Virus record (IMG/VR): IMGVR_UViG_3300042923_000569
Span: 1-64,000 of that record
Strand: one strand, 5' to 3'
DNA length: 64,000 nucleotides
The notes beneath the pieces are model-generated. The model saw only the letters and a list, made by a program, of their open reading frames with translations, did no database searches and was not told the origin of the DNA. Every line of letters begins with the position of its first letter. Position 1 is the first letter of the stretch. This document shows positions 57,502 through 64,000 of the stretch, in pieces. A program made the translations under genes and the position numbers.

Positions 57502-58326
57502 TTATTTTTGTTTTGGTAGTGGTGATTTAGAAGTTGCAGCAGTATTTTTAGGAACACTTACTGGTTTCAATACATTCTTACCGCTGTCCATAACGTTGTT
57601 GTTATCTTCAACTTTCGCAGATAGTGCATCTGAGTTTTCGAATTTGTCATCAGTCGCATCAACAGTGCCGTCTTTGATAGTTACTGGCTTAACACCGTCT
57701 ACTGGAGACTTAGCATTAGAAGCAACTACTGACTTCTTGTTAACACCTGCTTTTTCACTTTTTTCTGGAGCAGTTACACTTTTCATTTTGTAAGCTTCAC
57801 CAACTTTTTCAGCACCGAAATCTACATCAGAGAATTCGTCTTCAGTTTCTTCTTCAGAATCACCGAAATCATCAGATTGATCATCGAAATCAGCATCTCC
57901 ACCTTCGATTTCATCAAACATACGTTCTAATGAATCAAATGCAGACTTAATAGATTCCCATTGGTCAGCGTCTGGTTGTGCACCAGCTTCTTCACCACCG
58001 AAATCTTCTTCACCACCGAAATCACCGTGTGCTTCTTCAGCTTCTGGTTCTTCTTCTTCAGCTAGGCCAGCGAATCCGAACATACCTTCATCAAGTTCTT
58101 CTTCTTCGTCTAGTTTGTAGCCAACATCGTCAGTCATATCTTCTGAAGGATCGGTGTCTACGTCTTCGCAAACTTCTTCTTCTTCAGCTTCCATTTCTTC
58201 TTCTAATTTTTTATTAATTTCTTGTGCTTGTTCAACAAAGTACTTACGCATTTTTTTATCAGCTACTTCGTTATCGCCATTAGCAAAAGCTTGGATAGCT
58301 TCTTGCAATAGTTTAATATTTGCCAT
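57502..58326 (-). CDS. Acidic prohead core protein (gp67/68-like; start moved to MANIK)
   Basis: Very E/D-rich with LQEA/LDEG sites, between portal and protease. Confidence 0.7.
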   Translation of the reverse strand: MANIKLLQEAIQAFANGDNEVADKKMRKYFVEQAQEINKKLEEEMEAEEEEVCEDVDTDPSEDMTDDVGYKLDEEEELDEGMFGFAGLAEEEEPEAEEAHGDFGGEEDFGGEEAGAQPDADQWESIKSAFDSLERMFDEIEGGDADFDDQSDDFGDSEEETEDEFSDVDFGAEKVGEAYKMKSVTAPEKSEKAGVNKKSVVASNAKSPVDGVKPVTIKDGTVDATDDKFENSDALSAKVEDNNNVMDSGKNVLKPVSVPKNTAATSKSPLPKQK

Positions 58327-58370
58327 TATATCCTCCAAAAGATATACAAAAATTTATTTTGGTATGTCAT

Positions 58371-58722: not shown

Positions 58723-60462
58723 TTAAAATGAATTACCTAAACTATTAGGGTCAAATCCACCACCACCAGATTGTTCCTGATATTCGGCGTCAGCACTTGC
58801 TAAATTACCATCATCATCTAATCCTAAATCGGATTCTGGTGAATTAGGTGATTCAATACCTACTGATTGTAGACCCGCATCGGCTCCTGGAGCACCTTCA
58901 CCAGCAGCATTAGTAATAGCTCCCGGATTTTCTTGCATCCATAGTCTTTCATTCTCTACAATATCGTCTTGTTCGAAGCCCATTTGCTTCATAATGAATT
59001 GTTTAGAGAAGTATGGAAGATCATTCAATGGCATATATGTTTGGATTAATTTAGCATCCATTTCTGCTCTGCGGTTTGCTGCAAAGTTCATTGGTGGATT
59101 GAAATTAACTTCAAATGATGATGCACTGATGTTATATCCATTTTTAATCATATAACGTTTAAATTCTTCATCAAAAATACGACTAATAATACGTTGATAA
59201 CGCATACATTCATTATTAAAACGCAATTCACTAGCCATCGCTTGTGTTGCACCATCACCAAACATAGCTACACCGCCATCATCTGGTCCCATTGGTAGAT
59301 ATGAAGCAGGAATCTGTAAACCACGAATTAATTTGTTATTGAAATAACGTAAATCGTCAATTTGTCCTAAATTATCACCACCTGGTAAAGTTTCCACTGA
59401 AGAACCACGTCCTTCCGCTGTTTGAGGGAAGAAATAGTCTTCTAGAATACTTAATGGGTTATATGCTGCATCCATTAATGAAGTACTGCCACCTTTATTG
59501 GAAGGAATTCTTCGCTGGTGGATATCATTCTTAACACGCTCAACATATGCCATCGCTTGGTGCGGTTGCATATCACCAACATCGATTTTAAATACACGAC
59601 GTTCTGGAGCACGCTGAACACGGTAGATAATAATACTATCTTCCAATAGTTCTTTTTGTTTGTAGACTTTAAAGATATTTTCTAAGATACTTGTACCAAA
59701 AGGCCAGAAAGGATCTTGTCCAGTATTTAGGGATAGGTGAATTACGTGTTCAGCCGCTACTGGTAACACATCTAATTGACCGTTAGTGCCGAATGGATTA
59801 GAACTATCTGTTCCACCGCCTCCGGCAGCTCCACCTACTGAACCATATTGGTTTCCAGCACCAGATAATGAATTAGGTAATGTACCGTAAGCCTGTTTAT
59901 CAAATCCTAATTGAGTATTACTCATTACTTTGTCACGGATATTAAGAGAAATATCACGCATGTAATAAATTATTGGATTTTTACCAGTAGATTCATTTAC
60001 TACTACCTTATCGACATTCATTGGGTTGACCCAATACCATTCAAAGGTTTCTGGATCACGAACAAAGAATTGATCGCCGTATTTTAGAATTCCACGAATA
60101 ATGTCATAAATTCTAACCTTAAATTCATTAAGGTCACTCCATGACTCCAATCTATCTTCTAATGTAGTTACTTCGGTATCACCCATTGTATCTTTATATT
60201 GAATATTAAATGGCAATCCAAAATCTTTAGTACTTTGTGTACAGAAATCCGCAATAATGTTTAAAGCGGTGCGAATTTCAGGGTCTTGGTCCATTTGATC
60301 GTACTGACGATAACGGTCAACACGGTTTGATAATCCGGTATATACAGCAGGTAGATAAGAAGCGAAATTTGTTTTCGCTCCTGATGACTGTACGGGATTG
60401 TTGTTTTGTGGGGTGCTCGATATTTTCGAACGCCCCATTGTCATATGACGTTTCCAACTCAT
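58723..60462 (-). CDS. gp20: Portal protein
   Basis: Y..MD.D.EI..AL, LED..IIYR..RAPERRVF.IDVG, EDYF.P..EGRG..V.TLPGG.NLG. Confidence 0.96.
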   Translation of the reverse strand: MSWKRHMTMGRSKISSTPQNNNPVQSSGAKTNFASYLPAVYTGLSNRVDRYRQYDQMDQDPEIRTALNIIADFCTQSTKDFGLPFNIQYKDTMGDTEVTTLEDRLESWSDLNEFKVRIYDIIRGILKYGDQFFVRDPETFEWYWVNPMNVDKVVVNESTGKNPIIYYMRDISLNIRDKVMSNTQLGFDKQAYGTLPNSLSGAGNQYGSVGGAAGGGGTDSSNPFGTNGQLDVLPVAAEHVIHLSLNTGQDPFWPFGTSILENIFKVYKQKELLEDSIIIYRVQRAPERRVFKIDVGDMQPHQAMAYVERVKNDIHQRRIPSNKGGSTSLMDAAYNPLSILEDYFFPQTAEGRGSSVETLPGGDNLGQIDDLRYFNNKLIRGLQIPASYLPMGPDDGGVAMFGDGATQAMASELRFNNECMRYQRIISRIFDEEFKRYMIKNGYNISASSFEVNFNPPMNFAANRRAEMDAKLIQTYMPLNDLPYFSKQFIMKQMGFEQDDIVENERLWMQENPGAITNAAGEGAPGADAGLQSVGIESPNSPESDLGLDDDGNLASADAEYQEQSGGGGFDPNSLGNSF

Positions 60463-60477
60463 TTTTATATAACTCCA

Positions 60478-62679
60478 TTATACATTTCGAGGTGGCTCGG
60501 TATTTTCTGCAATCTGTCGCAATAACACTGCGATTTGACCGTTGTTCTGACCTTGCTGCTCTAGGTTATTTAGTATTTCGCCAAGTAGCTTACTTGCCTG
60601 TTCATTACTTGCATTTTTAGCAGTTTGAACGTTTTCAGTATCACTTTGATCGGCTTGTTCAACTTTTGCAGGAGGTGTATATTCAGGTGGTGCAGTTACT
60701 TTCTGAACTCCAGCCGTTTTAGGCTGAGAAGCAGTTGGTGATATTGGTTTAGCATCATTGGAAGCAGTTTTACCATCTGTTTTAACATCTTCATCATCTG
60801 AATCATTCCACCAGCTTTTAATTCGTCCTAACATACTAGAGAATTTACTTTTTAGTGAATTTATTGCATCTTGGAATTTAGTTTTAACATCATCGAAGTT
60901 TATACTTAATTTACTAATCTTATTGAATACCGCAGTAACGTCAGAAAAAATATGTTTAATTGATCCTGCTAGTTCTTTACCGGCAGCATCAACATCAGCA
61001 TCTGAACCAGTAAACATTTCCCAAATTAATTTTCCTACACGAATAGGTATTTGTATAAGGTCACCAGCTAAATTACCAAAAGCTTCAGATACTTTATTCC
61101 AAGAATCTCCAAAAATCATACCCATTAACTTAGAAGGAATACTTGCAAGCATTCCAAATGGTCCAGACATTCCTGTTTGGAATTTAGCAATCGCATCAGT
61201 TGCCAGTTTAGACATGAAATCCCAACCATCAGTACTGTTATCTGCCAAGTTCATTAGATAAGACGTTGCTTTTTCTGCGAACTTTGTATAAAACTCATTA
61301 AATGGTTGTGTAAATGTATTACCTAACCATAAATTAAATCTGTTAGTAAATTCCTCAATAACCGGACTAGGATTATTTTTTGGGTCATTCAACAAGTTCA
61401 TTGTTTGAAGCATTTGACGGTGGAAATTTTCAGCCGCTGTGTTACCAACCGCTCGGTCGATATCAGCTTGCTTAGAAATCATATCCTGATGTTCTTTAAT
61501 GAAGTTTGCAGTCATTTTATTAATAGTACGTTGGTCTGTAATTCCAGATTTTTGTACACCCTGCATGAACTGTGCGAATTGCTGAGAAACTTCATCGTTA
61601 AATTCTTCAGGTAATGATCCTAATGACCATTTAGAAGCATTTAATTGTTGTGAAGTTTTACCAAATTCACCCATAGATGCAAACATACTATTCCAAGTTT
61701 TCATTACCTCGACAGATTTCTTTTCAGTGAATCCCGCTTGATTTTGTAATGCAGAAATAGTTGCTCCAGTATCAATATTAGTACTTAAATCATTAAAACG
61801 AGAAAGTAATTCATCAACACTTTTACCAACAGCTTTACTTAGATATGTCATTGAGCCGACAAATTTAGTCGTACTCTGTGATTCATTCATATTACGCATT
61901 GTCTGCTGACTAGCGTACATTTTTTCGAACTTGAAGTTTTTTGCGGTAATATCAGCTAGTTGCTGTTGGGATACACCATATAATCCCATTTGTTCCTGTG
62001 TAAGTTGAACGGTATTTAGTAATTTACCAAAATGTTCTACACCGTCGCCGTACATACCTTCCATTGCAGCAAGAGAATCGCTGTTTTTGGTTACTGCTTG
62101 ACTAAATTCATTGATGCTCATAAATGCAGCACCCGAACCTTTACGTACTGTCAACATCCCGTTGGCTAACGTAACACCAGCACTGTTTAACTGATTATAC
62201 ATTTGTAACTGCTGGTTTAAATATTCATAAACCATTGCACCTACTTGTACAATTTGCATAAATCCACTAGCAACTAATCCAATTGGCCCAGGTAATGCAC
62301 CCAATGAACGTTGTAGTATTTTTGCAGATGTTCCAACTGAACCAACAACGTTCTGGATATTTCCATTATTACCTAACGCTGTTCTTCCGAGATTTGATGC
62401 TTCTCCGAATAAATCTTTAAATGCATTCTTGAAGCTACTGCCGCCGCCACCAGAATTACGATTATTATTTCCATTATTTCTTCGATTACCGCGATTACCG
62501 CCGTTATTACCAGAACCATTTCCATTGTTATTACCACCGCCTCCACCAGAACCATTTTTCTTTCCAGTGTTCTTTTTGACGTCGAGTAGTATTTCACGCA
62601 TCGCACTTAAATTATCATTCATGGAAACACTTTGGTCTAACAATTGCTGTTGGATATAGTCGTTGCTTAATCCTGCCAT
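60478..62679 (-). CDS. Tape measure / hub protein (gp29-like; start moved to MAGLSN)
   Basis: 733 aa, helical, G/A-rich with W/F periodicity; adjacent to gp26-like chaperone. Confidence 0.7.
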   Translation of the reverse strand: MAGLSNDYIQQQLLDQSVSMNDNLSAMREILLDVKKNTGKKNGSGGGGGNNNGNGSGNNGGNRGNRRNNGNNNRNSGGGGSSFKNAFKDLFGEASNLGRTALGNNGNIQNVVGSVGTSAKILQRSLGALPGPIGLVASGFMQIVQVGAMVYEYLNQQLQMYNQLNSAGVTLANGMLTVRKGSGAAFMSINEFSQAVTKNSDSLAAMEGMYGDGVEHFGKLLNTVQLTQEQMGLYGVSQQQLADITAKNFKFEKMYASQQTMRNMNESQSTTKFVGSMTYLSKAVGKSVDELLSRFNDLSTNIDTGATISALQNQAGFTEKKSVEVMKTWNSMFASMGEFGKTSQQLNASKWSLGSLPEEFNDEVSQQFAQFMQGVQKSGITDQRTINKMTANFIKEHQDMISKQADIDRAVGNTAAENFHRQMLQTMNLLNDPKNNPSPVIEEFTNRFNLWLGNTFTQPFNEFYTKFAEKATSYLMNLADNSTDGWDFMSKLATDAIAKFQTGMSGPFGMLASIPSKLMGMIFGDSWNKVSEAFGNLAGDLIQIPIRVGKLIWEMFTGSDADVDAAGKELAGSIKHIFSDVTAVFNKISKLSINFDDVKTKFQDAINSLKSKFSSMLGRIKSWWNDSDDEDVKTDGKTASNDAKPISPTASQPKTAGVQKVTAPPEYTPPAKVEQADQSDTENVQTAKNASNEQASKLLGEILNNLEQQGQNNGQIAVLLRQIAENTEPPRNV

Positions 62680-62692
62680 GTGTTCTTCCTCA

Positions 62693-62734
62693 TAAATAAT
62701 CGTATACAAAATATATAGTATAGTCATATTTATA
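62693..62734. promoter_or_regulatory. Face-to-face late promoters TAAATA (+, 62693-62698) and TATAAATA (-, 62727-62734), both followed by N4-TATAC
   Basis: Spacer between the divergent tape measure and chaperone genes. Confidence 0.65.
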
Positions 62735-62745
62735 ATGGAGTCGAT

Positions 62746-63603
62746 ATGAATAAGATGAACCCTTTATCAAAGTACACTAAAGTAGAAGTACTTTATACAA
62801 AGTTGATAAGTAACAATGTTGTGAAATACAACGAAGGTGTTTTAGTAAATGACACTGTGGAATGTGGCGTTTGTGCACGTTCTGCACGAGATGAATTAAT
62901 GTTCAATAACCCTGACGCACTAATGAATGGTGAAGCAGTATCTAGTGTTATTGAGAACTGCGTACCAAATATTGCAGACGCAAGAAAACTTTTTGTTCCA
63001 GATGTTGAACTACTATTGATTGCAATTAAATTAGCAACAAAAGAAACCGAATATCATATTGAAGTAGATTGTCCTGAATGTGGTCATCATGGTGCATTTG
63101 AACGTAACCTACAAGTACTATTAGATAGTGCTGAACTATTAGAAAAGCAACCAGAATTACTATTAGAAGATGTAGGTGGTCTACTTCTTAAATTCAGACC
63201 TCAAACATGGCAGGAATATAATACCTTTGGACAGAATATGTTCCAGCAACAAAAGAAAGCACAGATCCTAGAAAAACGTGATGATTTAACTGATGAACAG
63301 AAAATGGAAGTCTTTAGTCAAATCTTTGAAGAAATGACAAGATTGAGTTTTGATATGATTGTTTGTAATATTGATAGTGTTGAAACTGTAGACGGGAATG
63401 TGATTACTGAGAAGGAATTTATTGCAGAATGGTTGGGTGTACAGCCTTCATTTATTCTCAAACAAATTCGAGAAAAAGCAGATGAAGTCAATAATTGCGG
63501 AGTTTCGCATGAGATGGATGTAGGATGTTCTAAGTGTGATCATGAATGGACAATCGAAAATCTTCAATTTGACCCAAGCAATTTTTTCGTACAAAGCTTC
63601 TAA
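62746..63603 (+). CDS. T4 gp26/gp51-like baseplate hub / tail assembly chaperone
   Basis: NPL..Y, CVP.I, D...LL.AI..AT, CPEC, C.KC.H, terminal DPSNFF. Confidence 0.8.
   Translation: MNKMNPLSKYTKVEVLYTKLISNNVVKYNEGVLVNDTVECGVCARSARDELMFNNPDALMNGEAVSSVIENCVPNIADARKLFVPDVELLLIAIKLATKETEYHIEVDCPECGHHGAFERNLQVLLDSAELLEKQPELLLEDVGGLLLKFRPQTWQEYNTFGQNMFQQQKKAQILEKRDDLTDEQKMEVFSQIFEEMTRLSFDMIVCNIDSVETVDGNVITEKEFIAEWLGVQPSFILKQIREKADEVNNCGVSHEMDVGCSKCDHEWTIENLQFDPSNFFVQSF
63582..63588 (+). other. Candidate -1 programmed frameshift site T TTT TTC
   Basis: X XXY YYZ heptamer in frame, 4 codons before the stop. Confidence 0.75.
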
Positions 63604-63800
63604 TTTCTGAACCGGAAGAAATACGGAAAGAAATAGCAGACCTAAGATTGAACTCGGAAGATATTAAAAGTGGATTGATGGAGGTGTCAGTGTACATAGA
63701 GAACACTACATATGAAACGCTACTGAATATGCCTGTAACCGACAGAGATCTTCTTGTGAAGCAATATAATAAAAAGGTCAAAAAAGAAAATAAGAAATAA
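63585..63800 (+). CDS. Unannotated -1-frame extension (71 aa, GT/gpE'-like)
   Basis: FRTKLLISEPEEIRKEIADL...YETLLNMPVTDRDLLVKQYNKK...; bounded by TGA at 63570; no good own start/SD; terminator follows. Confidence 0.75.
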   Translation, partial: FRTKLLISEPEEIRKEIADLRLNSEDIKSGLMEVSVYIENTTYETLLNMPVTDRDLLVKQYNKKVKKENKK

Positions 63801-63805
63801 TTAAG

Positions 63806-63830
63806 AACCAGCCATTGTGCTGGTTTTTTT
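63806..63830 (+). terminator. Terminator after the frameshifted chaperone
   Basis: AACCAGC/GCTGGTT plus T run. Confidence 0.8.
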
Positions 63831-64000
63831 GTATCTAAATTATCTTAACTCTTTAGATTTGCCATTCTTCGAATGTCAAAGAATTTTCGTTGTTCTGTAC
63901 ATCACTAACGTTCTGTACTGAATCAACTCAATTCAGATTTATATCTAATGCATCACTGTTAACGTTACACACTTTATACTGACGAGATTTGTTTCATTTA

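Follow-up and report, generated by a model that had tools for sequence, protein, structure and literature searches.

At the end of a 64,000-nucleotide stretch of a giant T4-related phage (IMG/VR record IMGVR_UViG_3300042923_000569; hereafter the window), a gene of the T4 gp26/gp51 hub-assembly family lies head to head with a tape measure protein (TMP)-like gene, and its reading frame ends shortly after a potential slippery sequence. The features of the locus are as follows.

60478-62679, minus strand: neighbouring TMP-like virion protein gene (probable tape measure), with a likely start at the ATG at 62679; the mechanically called ORF runs to 62727
62691-62698, plus strand: weak late-promoter-like CATAAATA (7 of 8), about 48 nt upstream of the hub gene
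62727-62734, minus strand: T4-type late-promoter motif TATAAATA, an exact match, upstream of the TMP-like gene
62737-62740, plus strand: Shine-Dalgarno (SD) sequence GGAG, 5 nt before the ATG of the hub gene
62746-63603, plus strand: zero-frame ORF of 285 aa, a gp26-like hub assembly protein (short product)
63582-63588, plus strand: slippery heptamer T_TTT_TTC (X_XXY_YYZ), the proposed -1 shift site
63588-63800, plus strand: -1 frame extension of 70 codons plus TAA, predicted to form a four-helix domain, which together with residues 1-281 of the zero frame would give a 351-aa long product
63803-63828, plus strand: intrinsic terminator (10-bp stem, 6-nt loop, T run) right after the -1 stop

The 285-aa ORF ends AAT TTT TTC GTA CAA AGC TTC TAA, with the heptamer in phase. 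The -1 frame follows a TGA at 63570-63572, is open from 63573 and ends at the TAA at 63798-63800, such that 75 codons are open, 70 of them after the slip, and no terminator lies between the two stops. Within the window alone this arrangement is uncommon but not decisive: 8 of 84 long open frames carry an in-phase heptamer in their last 20 codons, although only this one has a -1 frame open for 50 or more codons. The preliminary description, which proposed a lambda G/GT-style -1 programmed frameshift in a gp26-like gene, was thus correct as to the anatomy of the site. Its further claim that the hub and tape measure genes share paired late promoters was only partly confirmed, because the plus strand has only the imperfect motif. 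Five exact matches to the T4-type motif in the window are not more than expected by chance, so that the assignment of the minus-strand motif rests on position only.

Given that homopolymer runs are error-prone, we next considered whether the arrangement might be a sequencing artefact or a decaying C-terminal domain. Contigs from 4 independent runs (4 studies) span the site with 2-3 SNPs and no indel, indicating that the T6 run is not an assembly error. One long-read contig (L288) has an in-frame junction, but also a fragmented upstream gene, and was set aside as probable homopolymer error. Together with the conservation, purifying selection and confident predicted fold described below, the independent assemblies without an indel refute the artefact or decay explanation for practical purposes.

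To assess the identity of the zero-frame product, we compared it with family models. It matches Pfam PF12322 (T4_baseplate) at E 9.6e-23 (81.4 bits against a cut-off of 24.5; residues 55-281 on profile positions 37-218 of 219) and phrog_150 at E 2.8e-28, covering profile positions 1-234 of 282, and its AlphaFold2 model has a pLDDT of 93.6 and a pTM of 0.89. We relied on these models for family membership because hhalign of the hub profile against T4 gp26 aligned the central Zn ribbon rather than the C-terminus (50% probability). The product of the divergent neighbour matches phrog_14121 ('virion structural protein', E 0, aligned from residue 17) and its homologues are annotated as putative tape measure proteins; these were detected in virions by mass spectrometry (MS), with 29 peptides for CBB_251 (PMC5259590), and in PA5oct and fENko-Kae01 according to the record notes. 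ESM Atlas resemblance to PhageMin_Tail/TMP_3 clusters (0.93) is a lead only.

We next investigated whether the site is conserved, by collecting loci with N-terminal or central peptide patterns that did not include the site itself. All 268 loci keep a canonical in-phase slippery heptamer 0-33 nt before the zero-frame stop (3 nt in most lineages), followed by a -1 ORF of 60-81 codons. Of these, 186 form a jumbo and marine set (163 unique sequences, in 74 clusters at 70% identity and 19 at 50%), including RaK2, CBB, GAP32, 121Q-like, PA5oct, Atu_ph07, XacN1 and Vibrio 2.275.O, with -1 ORFs of 72 codons or more from the site; the other 82 are cyanophage and Aeromonas Aeh1/Ah1-type loci with -1 ORFs of 60-70 codons. 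The heptamer is TTTTTTC in most, TTTTTTA in 3, A_AAT_TTT in 4 and TTTTTTT in XacN1. All three of its synonymous positions are fixed across lineages at 29% protein identity, although Phe codons elsewhere in these genes are mixed (TTT 466 / TTC 260). Notably, where the T run shortens to T5, the site moves 3 nt upstream to A_AAT_TTT, and the product still reads NFF. The zero-frame tail after the site varies in length and sequence (VQSF, VQGFSSQNQKK, E or A before the stop), whereas the -1 peptide FFRxxLL..EEI is conserved.

These data bear on the alternative that the -1 ORF is an independent small gene translated from its own start codon, the heptamer being only the coding of a conserved Phe-Phe. 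Indeed, records for CBB, GAP32, BF, 121Q-like and other phages annotate a separate CDS of 58-69 aa with an ATG, PHROGs holds it as a 59-aa family (phrog_18291, which the extension of the window matches at E 2.8e-35), and FF or F is a conserved motif of PF12322 even in T4 gp26, which ends EFFELL with the non-slippery codons TTC TTT. However, the first ATG lies anywhere from codon 1 to 75 after the two Phe codons and is 20 or more codons downstream or absent in 39 of 74 clusters; PA5oct has no Met at all, and gene callers called nothing there in PA5oct and in one further sequence (L032). In the window no ATG or GTG lies within 22 codons of the site, there is no ATG before 63675, and the first possible start is a TTG at 63648 without an SD sequence. 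Moreover, amino-acid conservation begins at the heptamer, upstream of all annotated starts, as does the signature of purifying selection: among single-base codon differences, the synonymous fraction right after the heptamer is 0.51 in the -1 frame against 0.20 and 0.18 in the other two frames. The independent-gene reading therefore appears very unlikely. The suggestion in the preliminary description that the terminal FF may be the trace of a conserved slippery site also fits, since a short paralogue in one sequence (L285) still carries TTTTTTC with no -1 ORF behind it.

A second possibility is that the long product is made by transcriptional slippage, with RNA polymerase adding one U in the T6 run, which would give exactly the same 351-aa protein. 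Consistent with this, we found no conserved stimulatory RNA structure for a ribosomal shift. RNAalifold on 15 Rak2-like sequences predicted no pairs, the 70 nt downstream of the site in the window fold weakly (-9.4 kcal/mol, z -0.5), the mean z over 75 lineages is only -1.1, strong hairpins 7 nt downstream occur only in XacN1, Atu_ph07 and PA5oct, and no upstream SD-like stimulator is visible. An invariant GCTTCT 8 nt after the site in the Rak2-like set is explained by the Leu-Leu codons of the -1 frame and is not kept at nucleotide level in distant lineages. The efficiency of a ribosomal shift may therefore be low. Nevertheless, six T would be short for productive slippage, which in bacterial and IS-element cases usually seems to need about 8 or more. 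What is conserved is the X_XXY_YYZ pattern, including the base before the two Phe codons, rather than run length: the four loci with only T5 keep the in-phase tandem-slippage heptamer A_AAT_TTT, and others use U_UUU_UUA followed directly by a stop. DNA contigs show no length heterogeneity, although contigs hide rare variants. Without read-level RNA data, we thus consider transcriptional slippage unlikely rather than excluded.

Next, we explored what the long product might be. T4 gp51 (249 aa) consists of a PF12322 domain (E 3.9e-52, residues 1-201) plus about 48 further residues, PF28602 Gp51_C, a C-terminal helical piece that starts VF-KLLVNPDEI, whereas T4 gp26 (208 aa) is the domain alone. 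In phrog_150 the window protein covers profile positions 1-234, gp26 covers 14-235 and gp51 covers 13-280, such that the two predicted products have the same two architectures as the T4 proteins, with the junction at the same profile position. In cyanophages and Aeh1-type phages the -1 peptide is clearly Gp51_C: the peptides of S-RIM50 and Ah1 hit phrog_634 ('hub assembly catalyst') at 3.4e-29 and 8.2e-15, a T4-type gp51 C-terminal HMM hits 44 of 44 such peptides (best E 4.7e-11; the best decoy scores 9.2 bits) and hhalign gives 95%, E 3e-8. The small 'gp51 baseplate hub assembly catalyst' ORFs annotated in T4-like cyanophages, such as the 45-aa CDS of S-RIM50, are the 3' part of the same kind of -1 ORF, placed directly after a gp26 gene that ends SFFA with T_TTT_TTC 3 nt before the stop, but are treated in the databases as independent mini-genes.

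For the extension of the window, which is of the jumbo type, homology to Gp51_C is only moderately supported. For the jumbo-type profile, hhalign against the gp51 C-terminus gives 37-73% probability (E 3.5e-4 to 3e-5), colinear and at the very C-terminus; an extension HMM scores above 5 bits on 60 of 92 gp51 proteins against 4 of 1012 decoys; and ESM Atlas resemblance to Gp51_C clusters is 0.92. However, the window sequence itself scores 0.2 bits against the gp51 C-terminal HMM, which is not significant, no PHROG or Pfam link exists for the jumbo-type extensions (the Pfam models searched did not include PF28602), and hhalign of the extension or hub profile against the single T4 gp51 sequence was uninformative. 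The extension folds with confidence (AlphaFold2 pLDDT 94.3). Importantly, about 20 of the best 150 hits of the extension profile are 319-351 aa proteins with a PF12322 domain and the extension in frame, and all 3 that we looked up lie directly after a 294-296 aa short paralogue. A local HMM scan of the window, 50 kb of CBB and the T4 stretch found no second PF12322 paralogue, but the HMM did not detect T4 gp26 or gp51 either, so that a divergent paralogue elsewhere in the 358-kb genome could not be excluded.

Collectively, these results suggest, with a probability of roughly 0.85 and in the absence of direct protein or RNA evidence, that the gene is decoded in two ways. Most ribosomes would stop at the TAA at 63601-63603 and give the 285-aa protein made of the PF12322 domain alone, the counterpart of T4 gp26. 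A fraction would slip back one base when the two tRNA-Phe sit on UUU UUC of U_UUU_UUC, re-pair on UUU UUU, read CGU next and continue for 70 codons, giving a 351-aa protein with the same 281 N-terminal residues plus the predicted four-helix domain (junction FDPSNFF-RTKLLISEPEEI; predicted tryptic peptide CDHEWTIENLQFDPSNFFR), the probable counterpart of T4 gp51. In this reading the site fixes a ratio of short to long protein from one mRNA that ends at the terminator at 63803-63828. The frameshift of the preliminary description is therefore supported, although the correspondence of the long product to gp51 had not been seen there. We found no report of this frameshift in full-text literature searches.

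In T4, gp26 and gp51 are listed as hub assembly chaperones, both are needed for hub assembly and gp51 is absent from the particle (PMC3004832). By analogy, both forms probably act during assembly of the central hub and tape measure complex and are not virion parts. As indirect evidence only, the virion MS of CBB lists the TMP-like neighbour but neither the hub protein nor the small ORF (PMC5259590), and the hub protein, unlike the neighbour, is not flagged as MS-detected in the PA5oct or fENko-Kae01 records. T4 differs in using two separate, divergently transcribed paralogous genes without a slippery site, gene 25 following gene 26 directly; in addition, the N-terminal domain of the window protein is about 75 aa longer and its extension is 70 aa against about 48 aa.

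Programmed frameshifts in tail assembly chaperone (TAC) genes are a hallmark of long-tailed phages, and the lambda G/GT, P2 E/E+E' and Mu systems (Xu, Hendrix and Duda 2004, as cited in PMC9024508) give, as predicted here, a short and a C-terminally extended protein in a fixed ratio through a -1 slip near the 3' end of a tail-assembly gene linked to the tape measure gene. The comparison holds as logic only, not as homology. The gene of the window is divergent from the TMP-like gene rather than between the tube and TMP genes on the same strand (in T4 and S-RIM50 the context differs again), the heptamer is U_UUU_UUC rather than G_GGA_AAG, and the N-terminal domain is a 280-aa Zn-ribbon-containing fold, much larger than gpG or gpE. 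No TAC Pfam or PHROG hit, no PDB sequence hit and no PDB fold match for either domain (best E 0.7 and 6.9) were found; a BFVD search returned only the extension's own family, apart from a weak hit to a Microbacterium phage TAC (E 0.72), and ESM Atlas gave a weak lead to P2 GpE clusters (0.90).

More tentatively, and short of even odds, a frameshifted gp26/gp51 gene might be the ancestral state of the whole T4 superfamily (jumbo Rak2/PA5oct/Atu_ph07-type phages, cyanomyophages and Aeh1-like phages), the two essential and long-enigmatic hub genes 26 and 51 of T4 being a duplicated, subfunctionalised replacement of that frameshift. The short/long pair would be the functional counterpart of lambda G/GT, with the short form handling the tape measure and hub core and the C-terminal domain of the long form recruiting or releasing the next component, and the rule of two chaperones in a fixed ratio would then extend to T4-like contractile tails through a non-homologous protein family.

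This locus and its 268 relatives indicate that most of the T4 superfamily outside the T-even core very probably encodes the gp26-like and gp51-like forms from one gene through a conserved U_UUU_UUC site, whereas T4 and at least one other lineage encode them as two genes. For many phage genomes this implies an annotation correction, since the -1 ORF is currently called 'hypothetical protein' or a 45-aa 'gp51', or is missed altogether (PA5oct, Ah1). The one-gene and two-gene lineages offer a natural genetic system in which to ask why the ratio matters, and gp26 and gp51 would, under this hypothesis, be short and long versions of one assembly factor, needed in a set ratio.

The contig, of 357,873 bp in IMG/VR, belongs to a Rak2-like jumbo myophage, its best DNA matches being Pectobacterium phage CBB and Cronobacter phage GAP32, at about 81% identity. 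Inspection of the sequence confirmed the arrangement proposed in the preliminary description, namely a slippery heptamer near the end of a gp26-like gene followed by an overlapping open -1 frame. The relevant features are:

62746-63603 (+), ORF of 285 aa ending AAT TTT TTC GTA CAA AGC TTC TAA
63582-63588, T_TTT_TTC heptamer in X_XXY_YYZ phase with this ORF
63570-63572, TGA after which the -1 frame opens
63798-63800, TAA at which the -1 frame ends
63648, TTG in the -1 frame, without a Shine-Dalgarno sequence
63803-63828, terminator with a 10-bp stem
60478-62679 (-), divergent gene for a TMP-like virion protein

A slip at the heptamer would join residues 1-281 to 70 further codons, giving 351 aa with the junction ...FDPSNFF-RTKLLISEPEEI. 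The -1 frame has no ATG or GTG for 22 codons after the site, only the TTG, and there is no terminator between the two stops. Inside the window, 8 of 84 long open frames have an in-phase heptamer in their last 20 codons, but only this one has a -1 frame open for 50 or more codons. Contigs of four independent sequencing runs cover the site with 2-3 SNPs and no indel, and thus the T6 run is real. Notably, the contigs of all four runs end or branch shortly afterwards, at 63856-63891, where the summed contig depth jumps (up to about 1082, in X9, against 35 on the gene) and loose ends show other sequences joined upstream of the element. Given that a 29-nt core (63861-63889, containing the small palindrome CATTCTTCGAATG) occurs only once in the 64 kb, this looks like a short intergenic repeat present elsewhere in the genome or in co-occurring relatives.

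We next asked what the gene encodes. The 285-aa protein matches Pfam PF12322 'T4_baseplate' (E 9.6e-23) and phrog_150 'baseplate hub' (E 2.8e-28, covering profile positions 1-234 of 282). The -1 peptide matches phrog_18291, a 59-aa family of unknown function, from its residue 19 onwards, which means that annotators of related phages call the 3' part of the -1 frame as a separate small gene. Homologues of the hub protein are mis-named in public records, including those of Yersinia phages fHe-Yen9-03/-04 and entries under JGI names, as 'Lead, cadmium, zinc and mercury transporting ATPase', 'ribosomal protein S27E' and 'glutaredoxin', presumably because of the CxxC zinc-ribbon motifs. The divergent neighbour is a virion protein (phrog_14121), annotated as a putative tape measure protein in Erwinia phages and resembling TMP clusters in the ESM Atlas; it was detected by virion MS in CBB (29 peptides), and in PA5oct and fENko-Kae01 according to the record notes. 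Its mechanical ORF starts at 62727, but the PHROG alignment begins at residue 17, and the real start is therefore probably the ATG at 62679 (MAGLSNDY...); the N-terminal part carries a long Gly/Asn-rich low-complexity run (GGGGGNNNGNGSGNNGGNRGNRRNNGNNNRNSGGGG). Downstream of the TMP-like gene lie two further genes:

58723-60462 (-), T4-type portal (PF07230, E 1.3e-117)
57502-58338 (-), very acidic 278-aa protein of scaffold-like composition

The tape-measure-like gene thus sits directly beside the head genes, unlike the arrangement around T4 gene 29.

To test the frameshift comparatively, we first examined ten annotated relatives from at least three genera plus unclassified phages. In these, the heptamer is identical and in phase, the downstream ORF is always in the -1 frame, and that frame is always open over the site. 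The zero-frame tail differs (VQSF*, EQSF*, VQGFSSQNQKK*, GFSFSLPNQKK*, A*, E*), whereas the -1 peptide FFR(T/S/I)(K/R/Q)LL..(P)EE(I/V) is conserved upstream of the annotated ATGs, whose positions differ from phage to phage. Additional loci were then collected with protein patterns taken from the N-terminal and central parts of the hub protein, so that the sampling was blind to the site. Together with isolates (PA5oct, Atu_ph07, XacN1 and Vibrio 2.275.O) and three metagenome loci, this gave 186 loci comprising 163 unique sequences, which form 125, 74 and 19 clusters at 90%, 70% and 50% protein identity, respectively. All 186 carry an in-phase slippery heptamer 0-33 nt before the zero-frame stop. 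TTTTTTC is by far the most common, while three loci have TTTTTTA followed directly by the stop, four have A_AAT_TTT, and XacN1 has TTTTTTT. The -1 ORF from the site is 72-81 codons in all 178 complete metagenome cases and 74-82 codons in the four isolates. The four A_AAT_TTT loci are informative: their T run is only five, the slippery pattern has moved three bases upstream, and the predicted product still reads ..NFF...

Phe codons elsewhere in these genes are TTT 466 and TTC 260, so the fixed TTT-TTC, and the fixed T before it, are not a matter of codon usage. The first ATG of the -1 ORF lies anywhere from codon 1 to 75 after the two Phe codons and is 20 or more codons downstream or absent in 39 of 74 clusters; PA5oct has no Met in the whole -1 frame, and nothing is annotated there in its RefSeq record (-1 ORF at 2334-2561 of the locus). 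In the Rak2-like clade, single-base codon differences between the heptamer and the CBB-type ATG are 51% synonymous in the -1 frame, against 20% and 18% in the other frames, and diversity peaks at -1-frame third positions. An AlphaFold2 model of the 72-aa extension, built from 71 sequences, has pLDDT 94.3 and four predicted helices, the first two of which start in the stretch upstream of any possible internal start. The hub domain also models well (pLDDT 93.6, pTM 0.89).

None of the 120 closest homologues listed for the hub protein is longer than 298 aa, and it was T4 that gave the key to what the long product corresponds to. T4 gp26 (208 aa) and T4 gp51 (249 aa) both match PF12322 (E 8.8e-64 and 3.9e-52), but gp51 has about 48 extra C-terminal residues, which newer Pfam releases call PF28602 Gp51_C. 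In phrog_150, gp26 covers profile positions 14-235 and gp51 covers 13-280, compared to 1-234 for the window protein. gp26 ends ..KEFFELL* with TTC TTT, which is not slippery, and gene 25 follows at once. gp51 instead continues in frame as ..DVF-KLLVNPDEI...MIPAERGFVLKLIEKDKQ, to be compared with ..NFF-RTKLLISEPEEI...NMPVTDRDLLVKQYNKK in the window. The ESM Atlas places the window's extension near clusters carrying Gp51_C (0.92) and more weakly near P2 GpE (0.90, a lead only). Profile comparisons of the jumbo-type extension with gp51 align the two C-termini colinearly: hhalign gives E 3.5e-4 at 37% probability against full-length gp51 and E 3e-5 at 73% against the C-terminal part, and the extension HMM scores above 5 bits on 60 of 92 gp51 proteins, against 4 of 1012 decoys. 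This supports probable homology but does not prove it. The window sequence on its own is not significant (0.2 bits).

The link is firm in other lineages. Cyanophage S-RIM50 (Kyanoviridae) has a gp26 gene ending ..ASFFA*, with T_TTT_TTC 3 nt before the stop and a -1 frame open for 70 codons there (66 from the heptamer), of which only the 3' 45 codons are annotated, as 'baseplate hub assembly catalyst gp51'. Aeromonas phage Ah1 (Straboviridae) has the same arrangement, unannotated in its RefSeq record (-1 ORF at 2202-2384 of the locus), and all 82 further cyanophage and Aeh1-type loci keep it. The -1 peptides of S-RIM50 and Ah1 hit phrog_634 'hub assembly catalyst' at 3.4e-29 and 8.2e-15. A T4-type gp51 C-terminal HMM hits 44 of 44 such peptides (best E 4.7e-11; the best decoy scores 9.2 bits), and hhalign gives 95%, E 3e-8.

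Finally, we searched the extension profile against 1.84 billion representative proteins, which gave 764 hits. About 20 of the best 150 are proteins of 319-351 aa with the extension in frame at the C-terminus (junction ..LDxxxxxF-R(N/S)(K/R)(I/L)(L/I)..EE(I/V)), after a PF12322 domain. All three that were looked up (Logan contigs L285, L286 and L287) lie directly downstream of a 294-296 aa short PF12322 paralogue, in the same synteny, divergent from a large TMP-like gene; the long genes there encode 343-351 aa, and the short and long proteins are only about 23% identical to each other. In L285 the short gene still ends ..TNFFTDNK* with TTTTTTC, but the -1 frame closes after 3 codons. By contrast, in the ENA long-read contig ctg47966l the hub gene is split into 232-aa and 261-aa calls and the junction ..FDPASFFRRKLL.. 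is in frame, which most likely reflects a set of homopolymer indel errors of a long-read assembly rather than a natural fusion. There are thus two genomic solutions, one gene plus a slip or a short gene plus a long gene, the second of which arose in T4-type phages and, independently, in at least one other lineage.

The most likely mechanism is tandem -1 slippage of the two tRNA-Phe on U_UUU_UUC, which would produce a minor long form alongside the major short form from one late mRNA. No conserved stimulator was found: RNAalifold predicts nothing in the Rak2-like set, the window's downstream 70 nt fold weakly (z -0.5), and only some lineages (XacN1, Atu_ph07, PA5oct) have strong hairpins starting 7 nt after the site. 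The zero-frame stop lies 3 nt after the heptamer in most lineages (104 of 182 and 82 of 82) and 12 nt after it here, and may or may not contribute. Transcriptional slippage would give the same protein and cannot be excluded without read-level RNA data, although the T5 variants, the conserved tandem-slippage pattern and the short run argue against it. Although nothing has been shown at the protein or RNA level, we put the probability that the site is a functional programmed frameshift, or at least produces the fusion, at about 0.85-0.9. The frameshift interpretation of the preliminary description is supported, with the refinement that the long product is probably the gp51 counterpart, an equivalence in role that we consider likely, if less secure than the frameshift itself.

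Function is inferred from T4, where gp26 and gp51 are listed as hub assembly chaperones and gp51 is required but absent from the particle (PMC3004832; see also PMC9024508). In agreement, the CBB virion MS lists the TMP-like neighbour CBB_251 but neither CBB_250 (hub) nor CBB_249 (small ORF). In logic, the arrangement is like lambda G/GT and P2 E/E+E', with a -1 slip near the 3' end of a tail-assembly gene linked to the tape measure gene. However, the gene is not a member of those families, as there is no sequence or fold similarity and the gene order differs, and whether the pair acts as a G/GT-like chaperone of the hub and tape measure complex appears about as likely as not. The gene is a member of the gp26/gp51 family, for which full-text literature searches found no description of a frameshift and no database record examined annotates a joined CDS; -1 slips in tail-assembly genes are known, and one within this family would be new. 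The most interesting consequence is that it would explain T4's gene pair 26/51 as the two-gene equivalent of a widely conserved frameshift.
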